A DNA stretch of 59,865 bases, filler included, from Bipalium vagum (GCA_037834085.1; 3 parts of 3 records of this genome joined end to end with filler, not necessarily neighbours in it), one strand, 5' to 3'; shown: positions 620 to 21,135, counted from the first letter of the whole stretch. Translations and numbers: made by a program. Notes: generated by a model not told the origin, from the sequence alone.

Positions 620-1300
620 AATGATAATATATGGTATAACTCTAGGAGTATAAGAAATTGAAGAAATATTTAAAATTATAGAAAATTAATTTAAATATAA
701 AGCATTAGAACCTTTAAAAGAAAATGAGTATCATATAAAAATTGAACCAAATCTAATTTCACCTAATTGTATAATGAAAAAATCAAATGGAATTGCAGTT
801 GTTTTAATGGAGAAGAATTTTGTTTTACAATTCACCTTGTCCTTTAGAGTTAAAAATACTAAAAATTTTCATTTTCAAAATTTATTTCTAAAAATGGAAT
901 TTTATTATGATGATTTCTTCAATACTAATTCTTTAAAAATAAAAAATAATTTTAATTTATCATCAATTTTTAAAATTTTAATTATTTGTCCTTCTGAATC
1001 TGGTAAAGCAATGTTATTGAACAATTATTATTAAAAAGGATTATATTGATTATAAAAATCAAATTTTTATTAAACCAGCCTTAAAGAAAAAAGATTTTTT
1101 TTTATTATTAATTATCAAAAGTTGAAGTTTCTCAAATATTTAAAAATGAAAATAAATATAAATTTGAAGAAGATAAAATTTATGATGATACACAAAGAAA
1201 AATGAAAATTACATTATCTGATAAAGCAATGAAATTCTACCTCCAGGTAAATTAGACAAAACTAAAGAAATATTTTAAGGAACAAAAGGAGATGAAAAAT
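620..1300 (+). mobile_element. Polinton/Maverick relic: minor capsid (penton)-like 3' end followed by packaging ATPase-like 5' part
   Basis: G.YEIEE-like motif at ~645, FNGEEFCFTIHLVL* at ~803-847, then a degenerate Walker A (ILIICPSESGKAMLL) at ~975-1020; frameshifted. Confidence 0.55.
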
Positions 1301-4380: not shown

Positions 4381-4459
4381 ACTAATTATTTTAATATTAT
4401 AAAATCTCATCTCAATAAATACTCTTCAAAAATACAAAATATTTAAACATAATAATTAG

Positions 4460-7400
4460 GTATTACTACAACAGAGCAAACCACAACATTACTTCCAACT
4501 ACAACAGAGCAAACCACAACATTACTTCCAACAACAACAGAGCAAACCACAACGTCTCTTCCAACTACAACAGAGCAAACCACAACGTTACTTCCAACTA
4601 CAACAGAGCAAACCACAACGTCACTTCCAACTACAACAGAACAAACCACAACGTCACTTCCAACTACAACAGAACAAACCACAACATTACTTCCAACTAC
4701 AACAGAACAAACCACAACATTACTTCCGACTACAACACAACAAACAACAAAATCTAAATTCTCAATAAAAACTAAAATGAAAACTAAATTAACAACAGTA
4801 AAGAAAATCATGCCAACTTCTACACACAAAAATAAAAAAACGACAAAATCGCCCGTGAAATTCTATACAATTCCATTTCGAACCGATGGATCAAGTAATA
4901 TTGCAATTTAATGATAAAAATAAAAAAAAATTCAGAAAAAACTTGTTAGAAAAAGAATTCTTTTTGTTTTGACATTATCTTTGATTTTAAAAAATGAAAT
5001 TATTAAGACGTGCTTAATATTATTTGATACTTTTAAATTTGTAGCATTTGAATTGTGCTTAAATAAAGTAATTATAACAAAAATATTTAAAAGAATTAGA
5101 AGTTCTCGAATATTTTAACTGTAACATTTTAATTTTGGGTCTTACTTCGACTAAACTCCAACACGATTTAAATATAGTTCAAATAAACATTTGTCATTGA
5201 AAATCCATCAATCAAATCTTATCTTCTGGTGATCTTTACACAATTTAATTATTTTTCTTTATGAATTGGGGTCAATTTTGTTACAAATTTTTGTATCATT
5301 AATCATATCCATATCTAATTTAAATATTGTCTTATTGTACGTGCGGCTGGTGTAGAACTTCTTCTCTTCTTAAATTTCGAGGTCAATTTTATTTGATGAC
5401 ATGACCATTTCTCAAGGCTAATTGTAAGAGTCGATGTCTTCCACTCCCAGCTTTTCTTTCAAGGGAATTCCCTTCACGAATCTTCTTCATATCTCTCAAG
5501 ATTGTTCTTCTAGATTGACCAGTTAGTTTCATAAACATTTTCATTTAGGCGATCCAGAAGGAAATAAAAAGTCCAAGACATTGATTTGAATATTTCATTT
5601 CCTAAAATGCTAGATTTAAAATAATCATAAAATTTTATTGGAATATATTTTCTTATCAATACCTTACAATATTAAAGAGTATATATACATATAGAGTTTC
5701 AAACAAAGTATCTAATTATACTCACAATTTTAAGTGTTTCTCTGTAGTTCCATCTTTTATTGCAATGGGTACTTGGCAATCTTATTACACATTTTTACTC
5801 TCAGGTTTGTATTGCCCCACATTCTTAGACAATGTCTTTCAGGAAGTCAAATTTGTTTGTACACCCCTAATCTTTATGGAGTGGACTTAGTTGTTCCCCA
5901 ACCTAAGTCGTGTTTTGTCAGTGATTCAACGGTGTGTCATCTTTGTCAATCCTCGTCAGTCCATTGTTGTGTATAACTCTAAGGAAGTGTTTCTTAAGTA
6001 GTCCGTAATGCTTTTCTGGTCCCCGTGTTTTATTAGTTCCTACCATTTAGCAATTTCTTTCGATAATTTATGATATATTTCGTCGCTTTTATTACTACCT
6101 TGTTTTTCGAGAGTGATCATATCGATAATCTCTGTTTACTGTCCCTCTTATGAACAGTATCATGAGTCTTCCTCTACATGCTAGTGTGTTTAATAAGATC
6201 GTAGACACATCCGGTGGGAATTTCAACCATTCTCTAACTCTTTGTTGTTATTTCTTATCTAGTTCTATCAATTCCGCAACGGTCACCTCACCTAAGACTC
6301 TTATATGTAGAAAAAGAATCCTTCAATAAATGCATCTTTGTTGTAGTTTCAGTTGGATCTTTGATATACCTGCCAGTTCGGTTATCAGATTCTTTTTCAA
6401 GTTTCCATTTTCAGGTCCTGATGCGGTCATTTAGATTCCCAAATATTTGTAGGTGTCCTTTTTACTGTTCATCAGTGGTAGTATTTCATTTTCTACTATT
6501 ATATTAATTGGGTTTATTTAAATGACTTTCTTTCTCCTATGATACCCAAGGTTGCGCATTTATATTGGTTTGTTGCCAAGCCACTCTTATTGAAGTTTCA
6601 AATAAGTACCCAAGTTTCTCTGTAGGGTTTTCTGGTTCTATTCTAGCACTCTAAGGTCATCAATATAAACTATGGTGGTTATCTATTCTTTGCCTAATCC
6701 ATTGCCCTTGTCTTTTACTTCCTTTTACCTCATCTCTATGATTTTATTAAAAAGAACTGGTGATAATGGGTCTCTATGCCTGACTTTTTGGTTTGACCTC
6801 TGGTTTTTCTACCTTATGTATTAAAAATGTCCTTGATTCCTTAAGTACTATTGGTATAAGCACTTGGGGATCTTGCCATCTCCTTACCTGTATACCATCA
6901 GTACTTTTGCTTTTCTAGAAGTTCAAATCACAGATGATGGGTCATGGAGAGATGATCATTTCATTGATTTAACTTGTACATTAACACTTAATAAATTTTA
7001 TCTTTAATGTAGTCATCATGTTATTTCAATTAAAAACCGGTCTTAGAATTTTTAAAATTGATATTTTCATTTTGTATATAACAAGTGTGGTTTCACGCTT
7101 GAAATACAATGCCGTCCATGTGCTTTGAGTCATCCCTATAATTTCTATAAAATGATGAATATAAAAATAATATGTACAGTCTTTATTTATCTATATGAAA
7201 GAATATGTTGAAGTACATGTTTTCAATCAAAAAAATCCAAACCATTATTTTGTAAATGTAGAAAACCGATTTTTAAACAACATAAACTTTTACGTTGTTT
7301 TGAATATAAGACTAAAACATCAGTAAAACATCTTTCATTTACATTTCACCTTACATTATGAGAACTCTTGTGCTATCTTCTTTGATTGCGCCTCAAACAA

Positions 7401-8798
7401 TCAAACCCTTTCCTCCAAATTTAACAGTTTTCGTGGTATATTTTGGATTATATATAGATACTAGCGATCTGCGGAGGTATTGTCTTTTCCTAGAGAACAT
7501 ATCTATCCGACTTTCATAAGTAAAAATCACCTCATTTCATAAAGTAGAAAGCAGTTTGCTATAATCTCTACACCACTGTCAGTGATTCTTAATATGTCGA
7601 TCGTTTAAATTTAGTTTCTTTGCTGCAATTCGTCCGAAGAAGCCATTCTTTTTCAAAATGTGCTTCACGTGGGATCCAAATTCCTAATTTCCGAATAATT
7701 CAAAAAGCTGCCAGACGTTTTGAAATGCATTGTTCAGACACATTTAATGCGACAGCCAGATCAGATTGTGTTTGGCATGGGTCTTCGTCCAACAGGTTTC
7801 TCAAATCTCTATCTTCACATTGTTTTTGTGGCTTCCCATGCTCCTTGTCCTTCGCATCATATTGGCCATTTCTAAAACGGCGATCTTTACCAATCTTTAC
7901 ACGTGATCATCGAAGGGGCATGTTCTCTATAGGTATCTCAAAGCAAGCGCTACGTTTCCGCTGCAGTTTTCTTGGCAATAAAGTATTGTAGAATTACTTC
8001 CAGCAAATTTCGTTTATTTGGGATGAATATTAACATTTTGAATAGCTATAATATTTAAACAATTGATATTAAAACAACTGTCTCGTGATATTATTAATTA
8101 TATGATATTTTTGTTTATAAATCAATTCAATATAATTTAGATATATATGCAAACAAATTTTTTATTATCATTTCAGAAAAAGCCGAAGTCATAGTTGTAC
8201 ACCTAAAAATTTTTAAAAACGTGTTTCTAATAATTTTTAATGAAATATAAAGCTAACATTTGCATGTTTCTAAATTAAAGTAATTCAAATAATGAAATTT
8301 TAATTTAAACCAAAATCTACTATTATATCCATTTTGACATAGTGACTCAAAAGATATGAAAAAGATTGTATTTACAATAAAATTCATACTTTTTTCAAAA
8401 ATGAAACATAAAGTTATTTATTTTCTATTTTATTTAGAGATGCGTTGTTATGGTTACGGTGCCGACCAATCTGTTGTAATTTATCATCATTGCTCTGGAT
8501 GTTTGGTTATTATATTATAATATTAAGTTACTTCATTAATTAAAAATCATATTAGATCACTCAAGTATATTATTGGAATGAAAAGCCGTGGTTAGATTGT
8601 ATTAGACCTGATTTAGATACCAGACAAATGTATTCGTTCTTTTGTGATAAGTACTTTTTGGACAACCATGTTCTCATTTATGTAAGCTGTTGTTACACGG
8701 ATTTGTGCAATAAGTTAAACTCTGCTTTTATTCTATTGACCAATGTGAAGTGGACGAGCCTGGTTTTTGTATTGTTTTCTTTTCTTTTTTTTATATAA
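4460..8798 (+). CDS. Mucin-Ly6/uPAR (LU, three-finger) GPI-anchored protein, copy A; exons 4460-4894, 8438-8505, 8556-8798; 5' signal exon unresolved (candidate micro-exon 1887-1916)
   Basis: Thr-rich phase 1-1 exon (ttag|GT...TCA A|gtaat) is frame-compatible with ttag|AG ATG CGT TGT TAT. LU domain MRCYGYG..HHCSGCL / ITQVYYW..DC..FC..SCCYTDLCN, then hydrophobic tail (NSAFILL...VFVLFSFLFFI*); AATAAA at ~8873. LU exons are well supported; linkage to the mucin exon is inferred. Confidence 0.7.
4465..4749 (+). repeat. 33-bp coding tandem repeat, 8 full copies plus a partial one, encoding TTTEQTTT(L/S)LP
   Basis: Unit actacaacagagcaaaccacaacattacttcca read directly; frame preserved throughout. 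Confidence 0.95.
5050..5600 (-). mobile_element. Tc1-like transposase N-terminal fragment
   Basis: GQSRRTILRDMKKIREGNSLERKAGSGR (paired-like HTH/GRPR region). Confidence 0.5.
5760..6900 (-). mobile_element. non-LTR retrotransposon RT relic
   Basis: DPLSPVLFN (~6770), YIDDL (~6665), GLATNQYKCATL and YKYLGI motifs; many disablements. Confidence 0.7.
7340..8206 (-). mobile_element. Mos1-like mariner relic
   Basis: 5' TIR TTAGGTGTACAACTATG at ~8206 on the minus strand; LLDEDPCQTQSDLAVALNVSEQCISKRL and GIWIP motifs. Confidence 0.75.
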
Positions 8799-8967
8799 AC
8801 AATAATATCAGTACTTCCCTGATGAAATTATTTCATGTATATTATACAAAAATGATAATTTTTATTGATTTCAATAAAAGAAGATTATTTTATATTTAGA
8901 AAATTAAAATTATTTCCATCTGATTTGAAAATATTTTACAATCATGAATATCTATTCCATGTCCATA

Positions 8968-9775
8968 TATACATGGTGCGAAATAAAATAACCAGACTGG
9001 TGCTGTAAGTTTAATTTAATCACAAAGTATGTACAACTATTTAAGGTCTCCTTCAAATTATGATCCATCACAATTCACACACATCTGCAAACGCTCTTTC
9101 CACCGTTCAAAACAATGCTGTAGGTCGGTAATCGTCAGGTTGCTTAATAGCTCCCTCGTCCTAATCTGCACTTCTTCCACACTTGCAAAATGCACACCTT
9201 TAAGAGCCGATTTTATTTTTGGGAATAGAAAAAAATCGTAATTCGGTCATAATGATACCTTGGACATCAAAGAAAACAATAAGCATTATCTTGAATGTGG
9301 AATGAGTCATGTGTGCTTTTTTCATTCTTGGCGATGATGGTGATTTCCAATGCATGAATTGACGTTTAGTTTCTGGATCATACTGAAATATCCACGTCTG
9401 ATCACCCCTAAAATGTTATTTAAAAAACTATTATCTTTATCAATTCATTCCAAGATATCAGAAAAAACATTAGCCTTGTTTTGCCTGTGTTCGTATGAAA
9501 AGACTTTAGGAACAAATTTTGCACAAACTTTCTTCATCCCTAAGGCCTGTGTTAAAATGCGTCGAACACCTTTTCTGTTCATATTGAGCAATTCTGCAAG
9601 ATGAGGAACACCAATTGTACGATTGCATTCTTCCTGATTGCATCTCCAACTTTTGCAATGTTGTCGTCATTGAATGATGTACGTGGTCGGCCCGGACGGT
9701 CGAAATCATCCACCGATGCTCTGTCTTCTGAAAATCTTTTGTGCCATTCAAAGACACGTGCACGAGATATTATTC
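8968..9775 (-). mobile_element. mariner relic (irritans/Himar-like), internally deleted
   Basis: KKVCAKFVP, YDPETKRQ..HWKSPSSPR, MLIVFFD and CFERWK motifs. Confidence 0.75.
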
Positions 9776-9879
9776 TGTAACAACTAAAGATAAAATTACG
9801 TCATATTACTTTTAGTAAGACAGAAATATGTAGTCAAATTATATATGGTTTGATAAAAAAAAACTATAATGTAAATCAG

Positions 9880-10260
9880 TAAATACTTATGAGAAATAAA
9901 TCCGATAATGAATATTTAGTATCATATTCACCGATGTTCCTCTTTTAGAAACAATTAATCTTTGCTTTGATGTGTGGAATGAAAAAAGAATTGAAATCAT
10001 GGTTGAGATAGCTCTACAGCAGTTACGAATTTTTTTCAAAAATGTTACTTTTTTGTTTTGGTGTACAAAACAGGTGGAGCAGCCATGGAGTCCCCACTGA
10101 TATCAACATTACCATCAATATTCATGTCTACTTAGAAAAGAAAATCGAAAATATCAAGTAGTAAACAGTTGGCCTATCAAAGTTACTTTGATAATGTTTT
10201 CTTAATATTTGAAAGTGAACAAATATTTAAAATTTGCAATTACATTTTAAAATTCACTTA
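9880..10260 (+). mobile_element. Penelope-like element RT fragment
   Basis: IFTDVPLLETINLCFDVW and GAAMESPLISTLPSIFM (consensus G.AMGSPL.P.LANIFM). Confidence 0.65.
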
Positions 10261-10392
10261 TATTATAAAAATATAGCTTTATAAAAACAATTTTATTATT
10301 TTGTGTAGGCATAGGTTTTAATCAATTCAAAAAAAATTAAATGTTATTAAAAATGGAATATATTTATTTTTATACGACATGGATTCAAAAAA

Positions 10393-11384
10393 TCAGTCAT
10401 CAATATAATATCCATTATTGAAAATCACTTTTTGCCATCTTTCAGGTAATTGCCGAATCCCGGAACAAAAGAAAGATATTGGTGTTGACGCAAGATAATT
10501 CTTGACAAAATTTCGTATCTGGTCAACATTTTTGAAACGACATCCGGGTAATTCATGTTTCATTAAGCGAAATAATTGAAAATCTGTAGAAGCAAGGTCT
10601 GGAGAATAAGCCACGTGAGGAAGAACTTCCAAACCTAACTGTAAACTTGTTTTCTGAGTATGTTTCACTACATGAAGTCTGGCATTGTCATGTACCAGGA
10701 CAATCTTACGCGATCCTTGCATGAAAAAAGATCCTTTTTTCTCGATTTTTTAGCCAAATACAGCAATTATTTGTTTTAACGTTCCGCATTAATGGTTTCA
10801 CCAGCTTTGAGGAGGTCATAATGAATGGGTCCTCTCATATCCCACCAGATGCAAAGGAGTACTTTTTTATTGTGAATATCTGTTTTGACAACTGAAGTAT
10901 CTGGTATTCCAGGGTCCACCTACGAATGTTTGGGTTTTTGGATTATTGTAATTAATCCATTTTTCATCTCCAGTGACGATTTTCCATAAAAATCTTTTTA
11001 TTTGTCTAGCAATAAGGAATGCGGATGTTGCTAATCGGCATAAAATATTGCTTTCAGAAAGCTCGTGCGGAATCCACTTTCCAGCCTTCTGAATTTTTCC
11101 CATGTCTCCCAACAATTCTTTGATCAATAGCAAGTGGCTTAGCGTATTTTCAGCAGGTCTTTCAATTTGGCTGTTTCCAATATCTGTGGAGCACCAATAT
11201 GTGGTCGATTGGTATCATCAAAATTTCCGTCTTTGAATCGACCATACCAGTATTTACATGAACTGCGGGAAACGGCATTATTACCAAGAACGGAACATAT
11301 TGATTTAAATGTCTTGGATGCATTTTTGCCTTGATCAAATTCATATCTTATGCAACACCGAACGTACAATTTTTCATCACTCAT
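10393..11384 (-). mobile_element. mariner DD34D transposase pseudogene, near full length
   Basis: WIPHEL, IVTGDEKW, HDNARLH and YSPDLASTD; 34 residues counted between D2 and D3; frameshifts. Confidence 0.9.
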
Positions 11385-11952
11385 TTTGAAGACTAATATT
11401 TTGGTTTTTATAAAATAACTTAAGCATAAAATTTAATATATTGATTACCAATGTAAATTTTCGCGGCAGTTATTTGAAATATATATAAAATTTTTCTGAT
11501 ATTTGCAATTTTTGTGACAAAAGATAAAATACTATATATTTTTAAAATTTGTTGATTTTATAGTTTTTGCATTCTAACAATATACTTAATAAATATTTAC
11601 ATTTCGAAGATTTCTTTAAATAATATCTTTAAATTTTAAATTTTTAAATGGAAAACTTTTTCTGACACTAACTGAAACAAATTTTTTTAGTGTCATAAAT
11701 ATTAATTAAGAAAATTTCCTTTACATATTAGCACTTTAGGTAGTCAGTACCTAAAATTGCTATATAAATGAATAATAATTGATTGTTTGTGATTATTTAA
11801 AGAGTTTAGACGAAAAGAATTGGTCGCATACAAACAAATGTGACATCTCAGATATAATTGTAAAAATATAGGTAAGCATACAGATTCATAGCTAAATCAT
11901 TAATTTATAATATAGAATCTATAATATTATAATTTATATAAAATTTAGAAAA

Positions 11953-12970
11953 ATGGTCTCAACAAAAGAAAGTATTCGCGAATTAATTCTGCGCAAAAAG
12001 CTGGAAAATGTTGATTTATCTCACAGAGATATTGCAAAATACCTAAATTTTGCCAAATCAACGGTAACACTTATGCTTAACACTTCGATAAACGATTAAT
12101 CACATAAAGAAAAGTCGGAAGTGTACGAAAGAAAGAATTTATCTCAGAGAAAAAGACCAAGGAAGTGGTACATACATTTCATAAAAATCCCGGAATCTCT
12201 ATTCGTGATATGGCTAAAAAATTTAAAATGTTGCCTGGTTATGTTCAAAAAGTCCGCAAAGAGGAAGGTCTGAAATCATATAAAGTTACAATGGTTCCAA
12301 ACAGAAACGATAAACAGCAGACAACAGACAAATATCGTTCACAAAAACTGTATGACAATATCATGCACAACTTTGGCCGCATAATAATGGACATCGAAAC
12401 TTATGTCAAGTCAGACTTCAATCAGATTCATGGTCAGCTTTTCTATACTTCAAAAAAGAAAGGCGATGTTGCACCAAAATTTAAAGAAAAAAAGTGGACA
12501 AGTTCGCAAAAAAATATTAGGTTTGGCAAGCAATGTGTAAATTTGGTTTGAAAAGCAGGGTTTCTGTAACCTGTGGTACTATGAACAAAATTATTTATGT
12601 TGAGGAGTGCTTGCAGAAACAACTTCTTGCTATGTTACTTGTTCATAACGTTCCAGTTGTCTTTTGACCAGATTTGGCAATATGTCACTATGGAAAATCG
12701 GCCATGGACGGGTACAATGAGAATGGGATCAATATTGTACCGAAGAGTGCTAATCCTCCCAATTGTCCGGAACTCCGACCAATTGAAAAATATTGGGCTA
12801 TAATGAAAAGGAAATTATTGTTAACAAAACAAAACGTGAAAAATGAAAAGGAATTTGAAAATGAATGGGTCAAAATATCATCTGACGTTACTCAAAATGA
12901 TGTGCAGTACCTAATGAGAAGTGTGAATTCCAAACTCTGACCTTTTGCATACAATACCGCCAAATAATAA
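11953..12970 (+). mobile_element. IS630-Tc1-mariner DD37E transposase pseudogene
   Basis: MDIETYV, PDLAICHY and NPPNCPELRPIEKYW; 37 residues counted between D and E. Confidence 0.85.
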
Positions 12971-13029
12971 ACTATGTAATTTTTTGTAAATATATTTTTA
13001 TTACGTCTATGGATATTCATAAATTTTGT

Positions 13030-13330
13030 GTTTAGCTAAATAAATGCGAATTTGATAGCTGTATCTTCAAAACAGCGTTATGTATTATGTTGACCAATTC
13101 ATGCTTAACTTTAGGTTGATAGTCATCATACACAATGTCTGAAATCATTTTCCAAACATTTTCCATAAGTGTTCAAATCAGGGGATCTGTCTGTCCAACT
13201 CAGGACTTGAAAAGATTATCCTACCGAATATAATTGAAATTTTTTGGAAACTTGGATTTGACAATATTCCTGAATCACACAAATCCATGTCAGAAGTGCC
13301 AACCTGTCTTCCAAAATTGGGAAGATCAAA
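13030..13330 (-). mobile_element. Tc1 transposase C-terminal fragment
   Basis: LSWTDRSPDLN motif. Confidence 0.45.
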
Positions 13331-13782
13331 GAATTTTATTTAAAATTTTGCTTATATATTTAAGGGAAATTTATATCATAAGTTATTGTAAATAACAGAA
13401 TGATATAAAAAGCGGAAGAATTTAAACATCAATCGAATAATTGTGACAAGGTAAAGTGGATTGCCAGATAGTCAAAGGTATATGCAATTTAGTGATCTAA
13501 AAGAATTTTCGTGGAGTTCACCGTCAAAGGGTGACAACTACTTGGTAAATGTATATCAAAGCAGATGGTAAATCATCAAACATATATGAAAAATTATAAT
13601 AATATTTAACTTTCTTTTCTAAAACATTTATAGCACTACTTAATAATGAATGGAAATTATTTTATTATCCAAAATAAATTATCAATTTGGGGTTATACTT
13701 CATTTATTGAAATCAATAAAAATTGTCATATTTGTATATTATACATGAAATAATTTCATCAGGGAAGTACTGATATTATTGT

Positions 13783-16700
13783 TTATATAAAAAAAAGAAA
13801 AGAAAACAATACAAAAACCAGGCTCGTCCACTTCACATTGGTCAATAGAATAAAAGCAGAGTTTAACTTATTGCACAAATCCGTGTAACAACAGCTTACA
13901 TAAATGAGAACATGGTTGTCCAAAAAGTACTTATCACAAAAAAACGAATACATTTGTCTGGTATCTAAATCAGGTCTAATACAATCTAGCCACGGCTTTT
14001 CATTCCAATAATATACTTGAGTGATCTAATATGATTTTTAATTAATGAACTAAATTAATGGATATATATTTATTAACCAAACATCCTGAGCAGTGATAAA
14101 ATATGACAACAGACAGGTCGGCAGCATACCCATAACATCGCATTCCTAAGCAAAAAAGAGCAATGCAGTATAGTTATCATAATTAAAATATTTGGCTAAA
14201 TTATAATTGGTTATCATAATTAAAATATTTGGCTAAATTATAATTGGTTAGCTTGTTTTTATTAGTTAATTGGAGATTACTCCAACTACCTGTTGAATTT
14301 TTCTTTCCTCATTCTGGATGTTAATCTCTGATTGATTTTTTACTAAATATGATTCATAGATCTTTCGTCTATATCAAAATTTCTCATAACTGCACTAATT
14401 TCTTATGAGTACTGTTTAGTTTGGTCAACAAAATTCATCGAATAATCTAAGACTTTACTGGTTCTGCTTAATTGCGAATATTCTTTAGTGATTGTCTTTC
14501 CTATATAGATTATTACATCAAGCGCATTTACATTAATACACGATACTAGGTTATATATTTAATTGTTGGTGTTTTAAATAATTCATTGTTTTCCCATTTA
14601 TTAAAATTACTTTTATATTTTCACGTTCCACGGGTTTTTCTTCTTGAAGGTTCTATATCTTTTTGAAAATGATATTTTATTATACTATTTTATATTCTTC
14701 TCTTTGATTTTCTTTTAAGTTTTAATAAGTTTATCCTTTCTTTCTGAGTTATTATTTTTTTTAATCCTATCATTAATAATATTTTCTACCTACCTGTTTT
14801 TTACCTGATATCAACGACTATAATCTATGAATTAATAATTTTATTAAGCCATTTTTATATGATATATATATATATATTCCTTTATGTTTAAAAGTTAATA
14901 AAATCAAAAATTTCTTAAAAAAAACAAACATATTTCTAAAAATTTCAGTTATTCATATTCTGTTCTGTTTTATTACCAATAAAATAAATTTGAAAAAATT
15001 TTATATATTTTGTTAATAATAAATCAAATTTTTAAAATTTTCTTTTATTCTTGTACTTTTTTACTTTCTTATTAATTATTATTATTATTTCTAATATACA
15101 CCTTTTTAAAAGCTCAATGTGAAAAAGGACTAATTAATAATAAGAAAGTTTCTCAACATGCAAATTTTAAAAAAACAGAATAATTTACTTCGTATGAGAT
15201 ATTCTAAACAAAACATAATAAAAAATAATTACTGTATATAAAAGTTGTTTCATCTACGGTTGGATATTTTATGGTATTGATATTAGGTTTGACAAGAATT
15301 CCGGTATTGGAAGTTATTGAGTTAGGGTTTACTTTACCTTTTATATTAGAGCCGATAGGAGTGGAAGTATGTTTCTTGAATTTTGCTGATCTCGTTGCCA
15401 AGGCTAAAGAAATAATATTGCCTTTATTTGATATGCCTGACGTTTTTTTGCTACTATTTTTTTTGATAGGTGTATTTGTAATTCCTTGACCTAAAATTTA
15501 TAAATACATAAATCTTTTTTATACTATGACAGTTTAACATGTTCCCGAAAAATAAAACAAATGATGATATAGTCACAACACAAATTTTACTAGTCAATAC
15601 AAGAATTTCAGTATTGAAAGTTATTGTATTAGGGTTTACTTTACCTTTTATATTAGAGCCGATGGGAGTGGAAGTATGTTTCTTGAATTTTGCTGATCTC
15701 GTTGCCAAGGCTAAAGAAATAATATTGCCTTTATTTGATATGCCTGACGTTTTTTTGCTACTAATTTTTTTGACAGGTGTATTTGTAATTCCTTGACCTA
15801 AAAGTTATAAATACATAAATCTTTTTTATACTATGGTAGTTTAACATGTAAAAACAAAGTAAATCAAATGTCAATCATACTGCCTGCGGTAATATTATTA
15901 AAAATCCCATCAATATCAATATAAGAGTTACAGGTTGTCCACTTTCTATGCTTCTGTTTAACATTGGTATAAATCCAATACTGAATGGCTTAGACAAAGT
16001 ACTATGTGGTGGAACTATGATAAGTGAATTTAGATTGAGTTGTTTGGCTTATGCAGATGATCTCGTCCTTCTAAGCACAACTCAACTTTTTATGTAAAGA
16101 CTAGTAGACCGAGCGGTGAAAATTTTCTCATGGCCTCACCTGAAATTTCGACCATCAAAATGTGCACATCTGAGAGTTCAAACAAGAGATGGAACACAAT
16201 CTCTTTTAGCAATAGAGTCTACTCCAATTGATACACTTTCCATAAATCAGTCATATAAATATATAGGTGAAAAACCTAATTTCCCTCCGTTCTCATTATT
16301 ATCCGATGTCATTCACCAGCTAACCGAAATCGCAAATAGTATTCTCTACCCCTGACAAAATTGCAGGCATATACAATCTTTATCACAGCAGACTCCTTTT
16401 TTTCCGCAACTGTTACTTTTCTCTTACAGATCTGACACACGGAAAAGATACCATTGAATCAAGTGTCCGCAGAATAATTAAACCAATTCTTGGCCTTGGT
16501 CGTCAATCATCTATTAAATACTTTTATTCTTCTTTAAAGGTCGGAGGAGTTGTCCTGGTCTCAATCTTAGATACAAGGCTTTCAATTACTGACCTCTGAT
16601 GATGACATCAATGCAAATATTTCTTTTTCTTCTCTTTGTAATTCGACCAAAATCTCAACAGGTTCCAGCAAAAGTATATGTCAATGTTGAGAGTCAACAC

Positions 16701-18330
16701 ATTCAATCAACATTGCACATTGACCTGTAAATTGAATTCACGAAATCAAAAAAACTATTTTTAATCAATGTCAAATTCCCATTTGTTACTGAAAAGGACA
16801 TGTATTATAAACATTATCAGAACCTAGCTCACTACGATGATCTAACGACAAGAACTCAAAAAGCACTTCCAGAATGGATCGTTGAACTAGATTCCTTTAT
16901 CGTTGGTTGTTTAGGGTCATGGCCAAAGAGGAATAACACAATACTATCAAAACTGGGGCTGAAGAAGAAAATCATCAATACAATTGCCTCATTCTGTGTC
17001 TCTTCAAATATTACATGGAGCACCGCACAATGGGCCTTTCATCGAGATAGGTCAATGTCAAGTTTGGTTGCTTCGAATGCCGATAAAATAGCTGATAACA
17101 TGATGATCGACCACAATCACACCGACGACAATGAAGACAGCTCTATTATGAACTATTATGAACATTATCTATTATAAACTATTGACTATAGCAATAACTA
17201 TCTGTGATACTTAACCATATTCGGTGTTATTGTATTGTATAAAGATCTTAATTGTATTTATCTAGCACGTAAATTTTTTTTTGAAATAAAATTTTGTATA
17301 TTTTTTGGAAAATCAATAATCTTACCGGAACTTCCACCAAGAATTTTTGAAGATCTATTTCTAGTTGAAACAAAAAGGTTGGTGGTACTTTTGTTAAATT
17401 TTACTGAGCTTCTAGTGAAGGTGGAAGAATTTTTGTTCTTTATGGATGTAATTGATTTGTTCTTATCTTTTGAAACTGTATCAACTATCATTGAATTTGA
17501 AATTATATATAATGTCATATTATTAATTTATTATTAAATTAATTAATTATTAATTTAATATAATTATAAAAAGTCTTATTTTTTATGTGGATTATTCTCC
17601 AGGTTAAAATCACCTCGTAAAATATTTTGAACAAATAATATACGGCCCTTTTGTTAATATTGTCATCTTCTTTGGCTTTCATAATATTTAGAATAACTTT
17701 AGCCACAGTATGACCTGGTTTTAACTAGTACAATAATTCTCGAACCAGATTTTTCATGAAGTATAATGGGTGTTAAATTTCGTTAAAATATTGTAAATGC
17801 TTTCCTGATATACGTAATCAACCAATTATTACTAAAAAAATTATCAGAAAATTTATATAAAATATATTATTTCAAAATATGAATATATGAATATACATTA
17901 TGAATACAAAATATTACAACACTAACTATAAAAATTCAGTATTCCTAATATCTTGTATTAACTAAACTGTGCTATATGACTACTGCACCTGCTCACGGTT
18001 TGGTTTAGTAGTTCAGAAGGAAATAGTTCGCGCAAGACAATAAACTGTATTATCAATCAAATACAATAACAAGATTACACAAAAAATGTCAATACGCTTC
18101 TCAGATGTGATCGATCATAACACGTCTAGCTCCATCTTAATAGAAATTCAATAATTTTTTGTCCTTCCGCTATGTTCACCAAGATTATTTTTATTTAAAT
18201 TTATTTCATAATTAAATGATTATTATCATATTGCAAATCTTTTTTAATTATTATAATAATTATTTTCATCATTTTAATTGTTGGATTTACCCAAGACACC
18301 TACCCAGCAAGTAATCTTGAGAAGGAGCAT
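13783..18330 (-). CDS. Mucin-like-Ly6/uPAR GPI-anchored protein, copy B (~324 aa); exons 18330-18291, 17484-17326, 15797-15591, 15490-15233, 14145-14078, 14025-13783
   Basis: All junctions are GT-AG and frame-compatible. Hydrophobic leader MLLLKITCWVGVL, three stop-free S/T/K/N-rich phase 1-1 exons (159, 207, 258 nt), LU domain with CCYTDLCN and a GPI-type tail. First exon/start codon is uncertain. Confidence 0.7.
14173..14250. repeat. Perfect 37-bp tandem duplication in the intron next to the LU exon acceptor
   Basis: gttatcataattaaaatatttggctaaattataattg occurs twice in tandem. Confidence 0.95.
14280..14560 (-). mobile_element. Penelope-like GIY-YIG endonuclease relic
   Basis: VY*CKCA*CNN..YIGKT pattern. 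Confidence 0.45.
15291..15848. repeat. 307-bp-period tandem duplication of an exon plus upstream intron of Ly6 copy B
   Basis: 15291-15541 is nearly identical to 15598-15848; acceptors at 15491 and 15798 are 307 nt apart. Confidence 0.95.
15850..17250 (+). mobile_element. RLE-type (R2/NeSL-like) non-LTR retrotransposon, 5'-truncated and deleted, antisense within an intron of copy B
   Basis: GCPLSMLLFN, LAYADDLVLL, LKFRPSKCA, YKYIG, INVKFPF and FIVGCLGSW motifs. Confidence 0.8.
17580..17760 (-). mobile_element. mariner N-terminal HTH fragment
   Basis: MKNLVRELLY..KPGHTVAK...LFKNILRGDFNLENNPH. Confidence 0.55.
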
Positions 18331-19925: not shown

Positions 19926-21135
19926 CAGGGTGCGTCAGCTATTTGAGGACAAAAATTGTTAAAATATATCATGATAATTTTTTTTAGTGGTGCTGAAATT
20001 AATTTCCAATAATTATTTATTAATTTAGAAATGAAAGAGATAACTTTTGAATTAACACAAGAAATGAAAAGGCATGCAGTTATTGTTGCATTAGCCACCG
20101 GACACAGAAATTTCCAAATTTCTAAATGTGGCCAAATTGTTTGTCAATAAAATTAGAAAGGAATGTTTGACAACTGATCAGAATTTTTCCTTTATATCTA
20201 AAAGAAAACACATTCCTCACGTTCAGGCATTGTCAGAAATGCTAATTTTGTTCATAATGTTCAGGATGTTGTTCATGAAAGTCCCAGAACATCAGTGAAA
20301 GAAATTGCCCATCGACTATCGTTTTTGAGTCAACAGTAAGACGAACGGTACACAATGATTTAAAATGCAAGTCCTACATCATGAGAACAATATTTTGTAT
20401 CTGCAAAAAGCAAAGAAAATCGTTTAAGACGCTCGAAGTGTCTTTTAAACAAAATCAAGCATCCTGATCATCCAAACATGCTATGGTTCTTTTCTGATGA
20501 AAAACTTTTTACTCAAGATCAAAAGGTTAATAGAAGGAACGATCGATGGCTATGCTCCAGAGCTTCTGAAGTCCCTGATGTTATGCACACCAAGTTTCCA
20601 TCATCTTTAATGAAATTGGGTGTTGTGATCAACGAAGGTCATATTAGGCCTCCGTATTTCTTACCACAGGGACTTACAATTAATGCATCTTTTTATATCG
20701 AGTGTCTGGATACATATGTGAAGCCCAGGATTGAAAAAGTTGCCCCCGGAAGGCCTTATGTATTCCAACAAGACTGAGCTCCCTGCCATACAGCATTAAA
20801 AACAAAAACTTGGCTATTCCTAAATTTTAACGACCATGTCACTACAAACTTATGGCTATGGAAGAACAAACATCCTCATAATACCAAAGATTCATTACGG
20901 GCTTCTATATTCTGCTATGATAAATATGAACAAAAACCATTTGATCGCGGCTTGTAAGCTTTTAAACAGCCGTCTTGTAGCTGTAATTGACACTGAAGGC
21001 GATTTTATTGAATAGATAAAACTTGAGTACCTAAAAAAAAGTTTCTAGTATTGCTTAAAATTATATATTCTTTTCATTAAAAATATTACTTATCTTTAAT
21101 ATCAATTTTTGTTCTCAAATAGCTGAGGAACCCAG
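19926..21135 (+). mobile_element. maT (DD37D-type) Tc1/mariner element with both TIRs
   Basis: ~33-bp TIR CAGGGTGCGTCAGCTATTTGAGGACAAAAATTG with its imperfect reverse complement ending at 21135; FSDEKLF..NRRNDRWL and GRPYVFQQD; third-D region deleted. Confidence 0.85.

Follow-up and report, generated by a model that had tools for sequence, protein, structure and literature searches.

We analyzed a window of 59,865 nucleotides (nt; filler included) from Bipalium vagum (GCA_037834085.1), of which positions 1-21262 correspond to contig C239865 of a 440-Mb assembly in 272,664 contigs. The contig has a GC content of ~28%, is eukaryotic, and is rich in transposon remnants; scans for tRNA genes and Rfam families gave no match. 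Searches of the genome for nematode SL1, the arthropod cuticle-protein domain Chitin_bind_4, and the nematode cuticle-collagen domain Col_cuticle_N were likewise negative. Between positions 4460 and 18330 it carries, tail to tail, two copies of a two-exon cassette encoding an eight-cysteine domain of apparent Ly6/uPAR (LU) type with a hydrophobic C terminus. Ahead of the copy on the plus strand (copy A, gene A) lies a long Thr-rich exon, and ahead of the copy on the minus strand (copy B, gene B) lie candidate exons rich in Ser, Thr, Lys, and Asn. On balance, we lean toward a reading in which the two would be convergent members of a small, lineage-restricted family of cell-surface glycoproteins, combining a C-terminal LU-type domain and a glycosylphosphatidylinositol (GPI)-type signal with low-complexity heads.

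The cassette and its copies

The first-pass annotation of this DNA had described two tail-to-tail, two-exon cassettes with eight cysteines, a CCYTDLCN end, and a hydrophobic tail, each entered through a phase-1 acceptor. All of these elements were found in both genes, as follows (a slash marks a splice border).

8436-8437, plus strand: acceptor AG preceding LU exon a in copy A (ttatttag/)
8438-8505, plus strand: LU exon a, copy A (MRCYGYGADQSVVIYHHCSGCL), phase-1 entry, Cys 3, 18, and 21
8506-8555, plus strand: LU internal intron, copy A, 50 nt, GT..AG, phase 0
8556-8798, plus strand: LU exon b, copy A, with stop codon TAA at 8796-8798; Cys 37, 52, 67, 68, and 73, and Asn74
8873-8878, plus strand: AATAAA of copy A, 75 nt past the stop, with the end of the homology arm just behind it
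14145-14078, minus strand: LU exon a, copy B (MRCYGYAADLSVVIFYHCSGCL), acceptor ttgcttag/, phase-1 entry
14025-13783, minus strand: LU exon b, copy B, identical in protein sequence to exon b of copy A

Genome-wide profile and protein searches, for which exon a and exon b served as separate queries, revealed three cassettes in total: A, B, and a copy C on a 1,028-nt contig (C246435). The exon borders of copy C are those of A and B, it is likewise entered by a phase-1 acceptor, and the internal intron occupies the same place in all three (50 nt in A, 52 nt in B, and 49 nt in C). Each cassette comprises 74 residues with eight Cys and ends in CCYTDLCN, after which the hydrophobic C terminus follows. 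An AATAAA equivalent to that of copy A is present in copies B and C, which is weak evidence, the motif being frequent in AT-rich DNA.

The substitutions that separate the copies are mostly silent. Exon a of A and B is 82% identical at the nucleotide level, with eight synonymous and four nonsynonymous changes (nonsynonymous divergence, pN, 0.077; synonymous divergence, pS, 0.56; pN/pS 0.14), and exon b of A and C gives a pN of 0.11 and a pS of 0.54; in both comparisons, synonymous change is close to saturation. Over the three copies, pN/pS is about 0.1-0.2 at a pS of 0.54-0.68. Judged by this substitution pattern, the cassette is a genuine coding unit under purifying selection.

When a profile of exon b was run against 1.84 billion representative proteins, a single true relative was found: P0001 (UniParc UPI000600938A, 250 amino acids [aa], E = 1.8e-13). 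Its domain shares 45-55% identity with the cassette, the same eight-Cys pattern, a CCYFDLCN end, and a hydrophobic tail. The alignment is gapless across the intron junction (...CTGCV-ITTV... in P0001, ...CSGCL/ITQV... in the cassette), and contiguity at this point confirms the internal LU splice by homology. P0001 has Phe where copies A, B, and C have Met and extends further toward the N terminus; hence the Met of the cassette is not necessarily an initiator. Directly N-terminal of the domain, P0001 carries a T/K-rich linker, and its N terminus is a Cys-rich orphan region of ~125 residues that has no counterpart in this genome. The sequence begins within a hydrophobic stretch, its N terminus being truncated.

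Besides P0001 itself, nothing came up in word-based searches of proteins, whether the query was exon b, the domain of P0001, or its N terminus; exact-sequence look-ups of the exon-b open reading frame (ORF) and of P0001 gave no match, nor did metagenome scans with A2 and P0001 as queries. A second candidate homologue, P0002, was rejected as a spurious match to a repeat protein. With one homologue among the representative proteins searched, the family is nearly orphan, and it is small. Five weak matches within the same genome (L004, L005, L014, L015, and L020) were inspected and rejected as paralogues, one of them being a retrotransposon. The stretch in L004 (C195000:2373-2519, minus strand) reads, interrupted by a stop, ...SCYYTDPSTKLQN... 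followed by a hydrophobic run; it resembles the end of the cassette and may be a decayed fourth copy. Directly upstream of the exon a acceptor of copy B lies a perfect tandem repeat of 37 nt (2.1 copies, 14173-14250).

Relation of the cassette to the Ly6/uPAR domain

LU domains are defined by 60-90 residues and ten Cys bonded 1-5, 2-3, 4-6, 7-8, and 9-10, with an invariant Asn after Cys10; in their genes, a signal-peptide exon precedes two exons for the mature domain, which phase-1 introns usually border, and the final exon also encodes the GPI signal (PMC6600238). An eight-Cys toxin scaffold that does without the 2-3 pair is a known variant of this domain (PMC6600238). In the cassette, Cys 3, 18, 21, 37, 52, 67, 68, and 73, followed by Asn, correspond to Cys 1 and 4-10 of the LU pattern, which leaves out the 2-3 pair. 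The pattern is kept in A, B, C, and P0001 and would be compatible with disulfides 1-5, 4-6, 7-8, and 9-10, for which the predicted residue pairs are 3-21, 18-37, 52-67, and 68-73. The CCxxxxCN signature of LU proteins appears as CCYTDLCN in the three copies and as CCYFDLCN in P0001. Gene structure agrees as well: a phase-1 acceptor leads into a domain encoded by two exons, and the tail is in the last of these.

Profile and model-based comparisons were less informative. The best Pfam match was Activin_recp, a family of the same fold class, at E = 0.07 and over the CC..CN part of exon b only. Neighbors of the P0001 domain in a protein language model were DUF753, Activin_recp, UPAR_LY6, QVR, and Toxin_TOLIP, all members of one and the same clan, at similarities of 0.86-0.88, which are leads only, as they are below 0.9. 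Several results speak against the LU assignment or fail to back it. The Activin_recp match (14.5 bits) falls short of its cut-off of 20.9, and no LU family of Pfam rose above threshold; P0001 gave no match in Pfam and Protein Data Bank (PDB) profile searches; an AF2 model of P0001 built on a six-row alignment was unusable (mean pLDDT 40, and <50 across the domain); and the internal intron is placed at the base of loop 2, where LU genes usually have it at the tip. Given the Cys pattern and the gene structure, we nevertheless regard an LU-type fold as probable.

Behind the CN end of A and B come K-L-N-S-A, whose small residues would suit an omega site, a spacer of ~10 mixed residues, and 13 hydrophobic residues that run to the stop; the tails of C and P0001 are laid out in the same way. 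By eye, this probably is the shape of a GPI-attachment signal.

Low-complexity exons upstream of the cassettes

Upstream of copy A, the 435-nt Thr-repeat exon with phase 1-1 borders that the first-pass annotation had reported was recovered, and its proposed connection to the cassette is as follows.

4460-4894, plus strand: Thr-rich exon of gene A, 435 nt, phase 1-1, acceptor AG at 4458-4459
4894/4895, plus strand: donor of the Thr-rich exon, A/GTAATATT
4895-8437, plus strand: proposed intron of gene A, 3.5 kb (putative splice), with fragments of helix-turn-helix (HTH)-type transposases on the minus strand

The exon contains 8.7 copies of a 33-nt unit that encodes the 11 aa PTTTEQTTTLL, followed by a K/T-rich tail; Ser and Thr together make up 49% of it. 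There is an in-frame stop at 4453, just ahead of the exon, and no early ATG, so the exon could be translated only as an internal exon. Variants among the repeat units are synonymous in nine cases and nonsynonymous in six when read in the Thr frame, whereas the two remaining sense frames give 0:15 and 4:11; the bias of the Thr frame is matched by one frame of the antisense strand.

When the genome was searched for the pattern of the exon end, three places only were found: gene A, C129801, and C222366. The exon on C129801 starts at an acceptor ttttag/ca with I-T-T, passes through a Thr/Arg/Pro-rich stretch and a poly-Thr run of mixed ACA and ACG codons, and ends in a K-rich tail, ...TIPVPTDDS, and a donor A/GTAATATT. 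Its last 36 nt and donor are 86% identical to gene A 4867-4902, and the rest of the contig has no further match to the window. The exon on C222366 (D) is 88% identical to that of C129801 through the downstream intron. A 66-nt in-frame indel separates the two in the Thr run, and the last ~95 nt of the exon are identical, while the intron is 8% diverged. In all three exons the borders are phase 1-1 and the length (435, 282, and 216 nt) is divisible by three. Tandem Thr-rich repeats in one large exon whose length varies among paralogues are characteristic of mucin-like (proline/threonine/serine, PTS) sequences. With its borders and 3′ end conserved and its length changes in frame, the Thr exon behaves as a coding exon; on this comparison we conclude that it is a real coding exon of mucin type. 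Directly upstream of the third Thr exon, on C222366 (L042), frames resembling a pogo/Tigger-type DDE transposase were noted at ~746-1209 (plus strand).

A second Thr exon also lies close to a cassette. The contig of copy C starts with the same 77 nt that end C129801, in the correct orientation, and the Thr exon of C129801 is on the correct strand, 5 kb upstream of the copy C junction. If the two were not parts of one gene, finding a Thr exon beside an LU cassette on two occasions would be difficult to account for. Placing the mucin before the LU domain in gene A is thus well supported by paralogy and phase. The contig ends at L003:1-423, L030:1-92, and L030:5640-5831 sit in dispersed repeats, and neighboring contigs overlap by exactly 77 nt at these repeat ends (L003 and L030), pointing to a de Bruijn assembly with k=77.

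For gene B, the candidate exons are these.

18330-18291, minus strand: candidate leader; ATG, MLLLKITCWVGVL, donor G/GTAAAT, phase 1; weakly hydrophobic
17484-17326, minus strand: candidate exon 2, phase 1-1, donor CCG/GTAAGA; 159 nt long, or 150 nt if it starts at 17475
15797-15645, minus strand: candidate exon 3, rich in S/T/K, phase 1-1, 153 nt
15490-15338, minus strand: candidate exon 4, rich in S/T/K, phase 1-1, 153 nt, donor AAG/GTAAAG

The leader is the best-scoring phase-1 leader candidate on the minus strand. Three phase 1-1 exons rich in S/T/K/N, the first with four N-X-S sequons, had been reported earlier and are present; the exon with the sequons (exon 2) is single copy in the genome. 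The statement that the N-terminal regions of genes A and B share no similarity also held, a comparison of the two having found none. The end assigned to the last exon did not fare as well. Exons 3 and 4 are tandem duplicates within a 307-nt unit, a relation absent from the earlier description, and differ at 3 of 153 exon positions, compared with 8 of 98 positions in the intron flanks (Fisher p = 0.026). Better preservation of the exon than of its flanks gives mild support to the 153-nt borders and speaks against an extension to 15233, where the earlier description had placed the end. Either end leaves phase 1. In view of this conservation and of the strong donor AAG/GTAAAG, 15338 is the likelier last donor, and the junction given as 15233/14145 is probably 15338/14145. 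Within the proposed gene-B intron, in antisense orientation, 15852-17174 (plus strand) holds a fragment of a non-LTR (long terminal repeat) retrotransposon reverse transcriptase that has a YADD motif and matches RVT_1 below threshold.

Since copy B has no in-frame ATG upstream of exon a and has been under selection, some exon further upstream has to be part of gene B. That the S/T/K/N-rich exons fill this role is about as likely as not. A rival possibility, which we consider tentative yet worth serious attention, is that only gene A joins a mucin to an LU domain and that B is a partial duplicate consisting of the cassette alone. The S/T/K/N exons would then be unused, and B would either splice to a distant Thr exon past the end of the contig, such as that of C222366, or be decaying while conversion keeps it similar to A. 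Consistent with this, the homology between A and B begins at the exon a acceptor and ends at the poly(A) signal, and the genome contains three Thr exons and three cassettes, the Thr exon of C222366 being the one with no assigned cassette. The candidate exons themselves contribute to the doubt: they have no relatives in genome or protein searches, their antisense frames are open too, and the leader is weakly hydrophobic. Decay of B is, however, at odds with the excess of synonymous changes in its exon a (pN/pS 0.14), which indicates selection. An unbroken phase-1 chain with the strong donors GTAAAT, GTAAGA, and GTAAAG, together with the better preservation of the duplicated exon, argues that the upstream exons are used, and the ends of C222366 have no overlap with those of the window.

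We also considered whether A and B are ordinary three-exon Ly6 genes, in which case the low-complexity exons would belong to separate genes or be noncoding, as a minisatellite or as open-frame noise of AT-rich DNA. A signal-peptide exon followed by two LU exons is the typical layout (PMC6600238), and just upstream of exon a in copy A, the ATGs at 8356 and 8401 are in frame and could supply a short hydrophobic leader before MRCY with no upstream exon. The Thr frame, moreover, runs on past its donor to a stop of its own at 4909, with an AATAAA at 4919, so that a short mucin-only isoform is conceivable; and the window has many long open frames, on either strand. A run search for the organism found one run only (X1, of unstated kind, DNA-like, and possibly itself the source data of the assembly) and no RNA run. 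Copies B and C, in contrast, have no in-frame ATG ahead of exon a. The signal-peptide-like read-through of copy A is fortuitous: 8356-8437 (plus strand) is a polypyrimidine tract that happens to be open in frame, in copy A only, and the hydrophobic stretch is its translation; such a tract is a trap for gene prediction. A signal-peptide-like ORF upstream of copy C (L003:39-113) was rejected because it sits in a dispersed repeat. The Thr exon exists as three paralogous copies that keep their phase-1 borders and differ in length by whole codons, one of these paralogues adjoins an LU cassette, and the domain of P0001 is preceded by a T/K-rich linker. Taken together, these points make the ordinary Ly6 layout unlikely for this pair.

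The reading with low-complexity heads ahead of the LU domain, which we prefer to both alternatives, has weak points of its own besides those already named. No signal-peptide exon for gene A was found within 4.4 kb upstream. Support for the junctions consists of phase and paralogy only, except at the internal LU intron. The 77-mer that joins C129801 to copy C sits in a repeat and occurs also on C257815; the start of C129801 lies in a repeat with >1,300 candidate copies.

Proposed architecture and the inverted pair

In the arrangement that we propose, a constant two-exon cassette would be entered via a phase-1 intron. A and its paralogue C would have a phase 1-1, Thr-rich, mucin-like exon ahead of it, and in gene B the cassette would be preceded by other phase 1-1 exons, which are rich in S/T/K/N, contain four sequons, and include one duplicated exon. 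After entry into the endoplasmic reticulum (ER), the products would be cleaved or transamidated at the KLNSA site. The three-finger domain would thereby be seated on a lipid anchor next to the membrane, and the glycosylated low-complexity part (presumably O-glycosylated in A) would project outward as the distal element. Head diversity could come from repeats that expand or contract and from exons that are duplicated or exchanged within phase-1 introns; the cassette would be kept uniform by gene conversion. We infer the long-range splices, secretion, glycosylation, GPI anchoring, fold, and function from the sequence. Judging by the architecture, the function might be in the glycocalyx, protection, the control of adhesion, or cell-surface interaction.

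The earlier architectural interpretation is supported in part, in its core of an LU-type cassette with the Thr exon ahead of it, for which the paralogues and the linker of P0001 speak. Its designation as a surface-coat family is too strong because only three cassettes and three Thr exons were found in 440 Mb. Were the organism a parasite or a symbiont, the proteins would be candidate surface-coat components.

A broader evolutionary view is possible, although we advance it with caution. The LU cassette may be a mobile phase-1 module that intronic recombination has joined to unrelated heads, conversion holding the cassette constant while the heads diversify. The heads might then, just as tentatively, fall into three kinds: the Thr-mucin of A, C, and D; for B, a stalk rich in S/T/K/N that carries N-glycans; and, in P0001, a Cys-rich domain with a T-linker. 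On this view, the surface glycoproteins would form a family with variable heads and a constant anchor.

Compared with single-domain LU proteins such as CD59, Ly6, and Lynx and with the eight-Cys toxin scaffold (PMC6600238), the cassette is similar in its 74 residues, in its CCxxxxCN with Asn after the last Cys, and in a Cys spacing compatible with the LU disulfides that remain when the 2-3 pair is lost. The two-exon domain, phase-1 entry, anchor signal in the last exon, and clustering of paralogues are further similarities. Unlike these proteins, it has no 2-3 pair and no significant LU Pfam match, its intron is placed at the base and not the tip of loop 2, and long low-complexity exons precede the domain where a signal peptide would directly do so. 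The LU domain has been described as only a "proto-module" that is almost never joined to foreign sequence, the exceptions being GPIHBP1, SP-10, and TGF-beta receptors (PMC6600238).

Two of these, GPIHBP1 and SP-10/ACRV1, have their LU domain at the C terminus, behind a nonhomologous N-terminal part that is disordered or repetitive. The LU domain of GPIHBP1 is membrane-proximal and GPI-anchored, and the layout proposed here resembles its form of a disordered head on an LU pedestal. There is no sequence relationship, however: the heads here are Thr-rich and mucin-like or S/T/K/N-rich and basic rather than acidic, the genome is of AT-rich invertebrate type, and the same cassette is found behind different heads. 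A combination of LU, a Ser/Thr-rich O-glycosylated region, and a GPI anchor also occurs in C4.4A (LYPD3) and in further GPI proteins that have S/T/P-rich stalks. The stalk of C4.4A is inserted between the LU domains and the anchor, and that of DAF likewise lies below the domain; in the arrangement proposed here the order is reversed, with an N-terminal stalk and an LU domain abutting the anchor. The components are therefore known, and their combination has partial precedents in GPIHBP1, SP-10, and C4.4A. If correct, the architecture would provide a clear case, from an invertebrate, of LU exons shuffled behind different phase-1 heads, and it would show a mucin displayed on a three-finger pedestal. 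The family escapes ORF-based annotation and shows what surface genes with short exons and low-complexity sequence look like in AT-rich genomes.

The inverted arrangement of A and B is accompanied by near identity of a part of the two genes, and the region between them is filled by transposons.

8522-8883: arm 1 of the inverted repeat (part of the intron, exon b, and 3′ untranslated region [UTR])
13698-14059: arm 2 of the inverted repeat
8900-13690: spacer between the genes, made up of high-copy transposon remnants
11139-11384, minus strand: Mos1/mariner HTH (HTH_48, E = 1.6e-19), in the remnant 10393-11384
12674-12940, plus strand: DDE_3-like transposase fragment, within the remnant 12165-12940

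The arms are 98% complementary. From the middle of the intron to the end of the 3′ UTR, A and B differ at two synonymous positions only, which are also the sole differences in exon b (13942 and 13989). The pS of 0.56 in exon a marks A and B as old duplicates, and the two differences between mid-intron and 3′ UTR were therefore read as recent gene conversion. An X1 contig with the unique flank of B carries the letters of A at both positions, a pattern that suggests polymorphic or ongoing conversion between the arms. The pair is hardly an artefact, a single gene assembled twice as a palindrome, even with arms 98-100% identical in a strongly fragmented assembly (272,664 contigs): the copies differ in exon a and everywhere outside the arms, the unique flank of each arm is connected to that arm by X1 contigs, and summed X1 depth in the arms is ~2× the unique depth, so that it is not an obvious misassembly, although X1 may be the data from which the assembly was made.

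Over the transposons of the spacer, X1 word depth reaches hundreds to thousands, compared with about 20-30 in unique sequence; these families are thus present at very high copy number in the genome. Beyond gene B, at 20100-21010 (plus strand), open frames with Tc1/mariner-like motifs (WFFSDEKLF...) and no Pfam match probably represent another decayed transposon.

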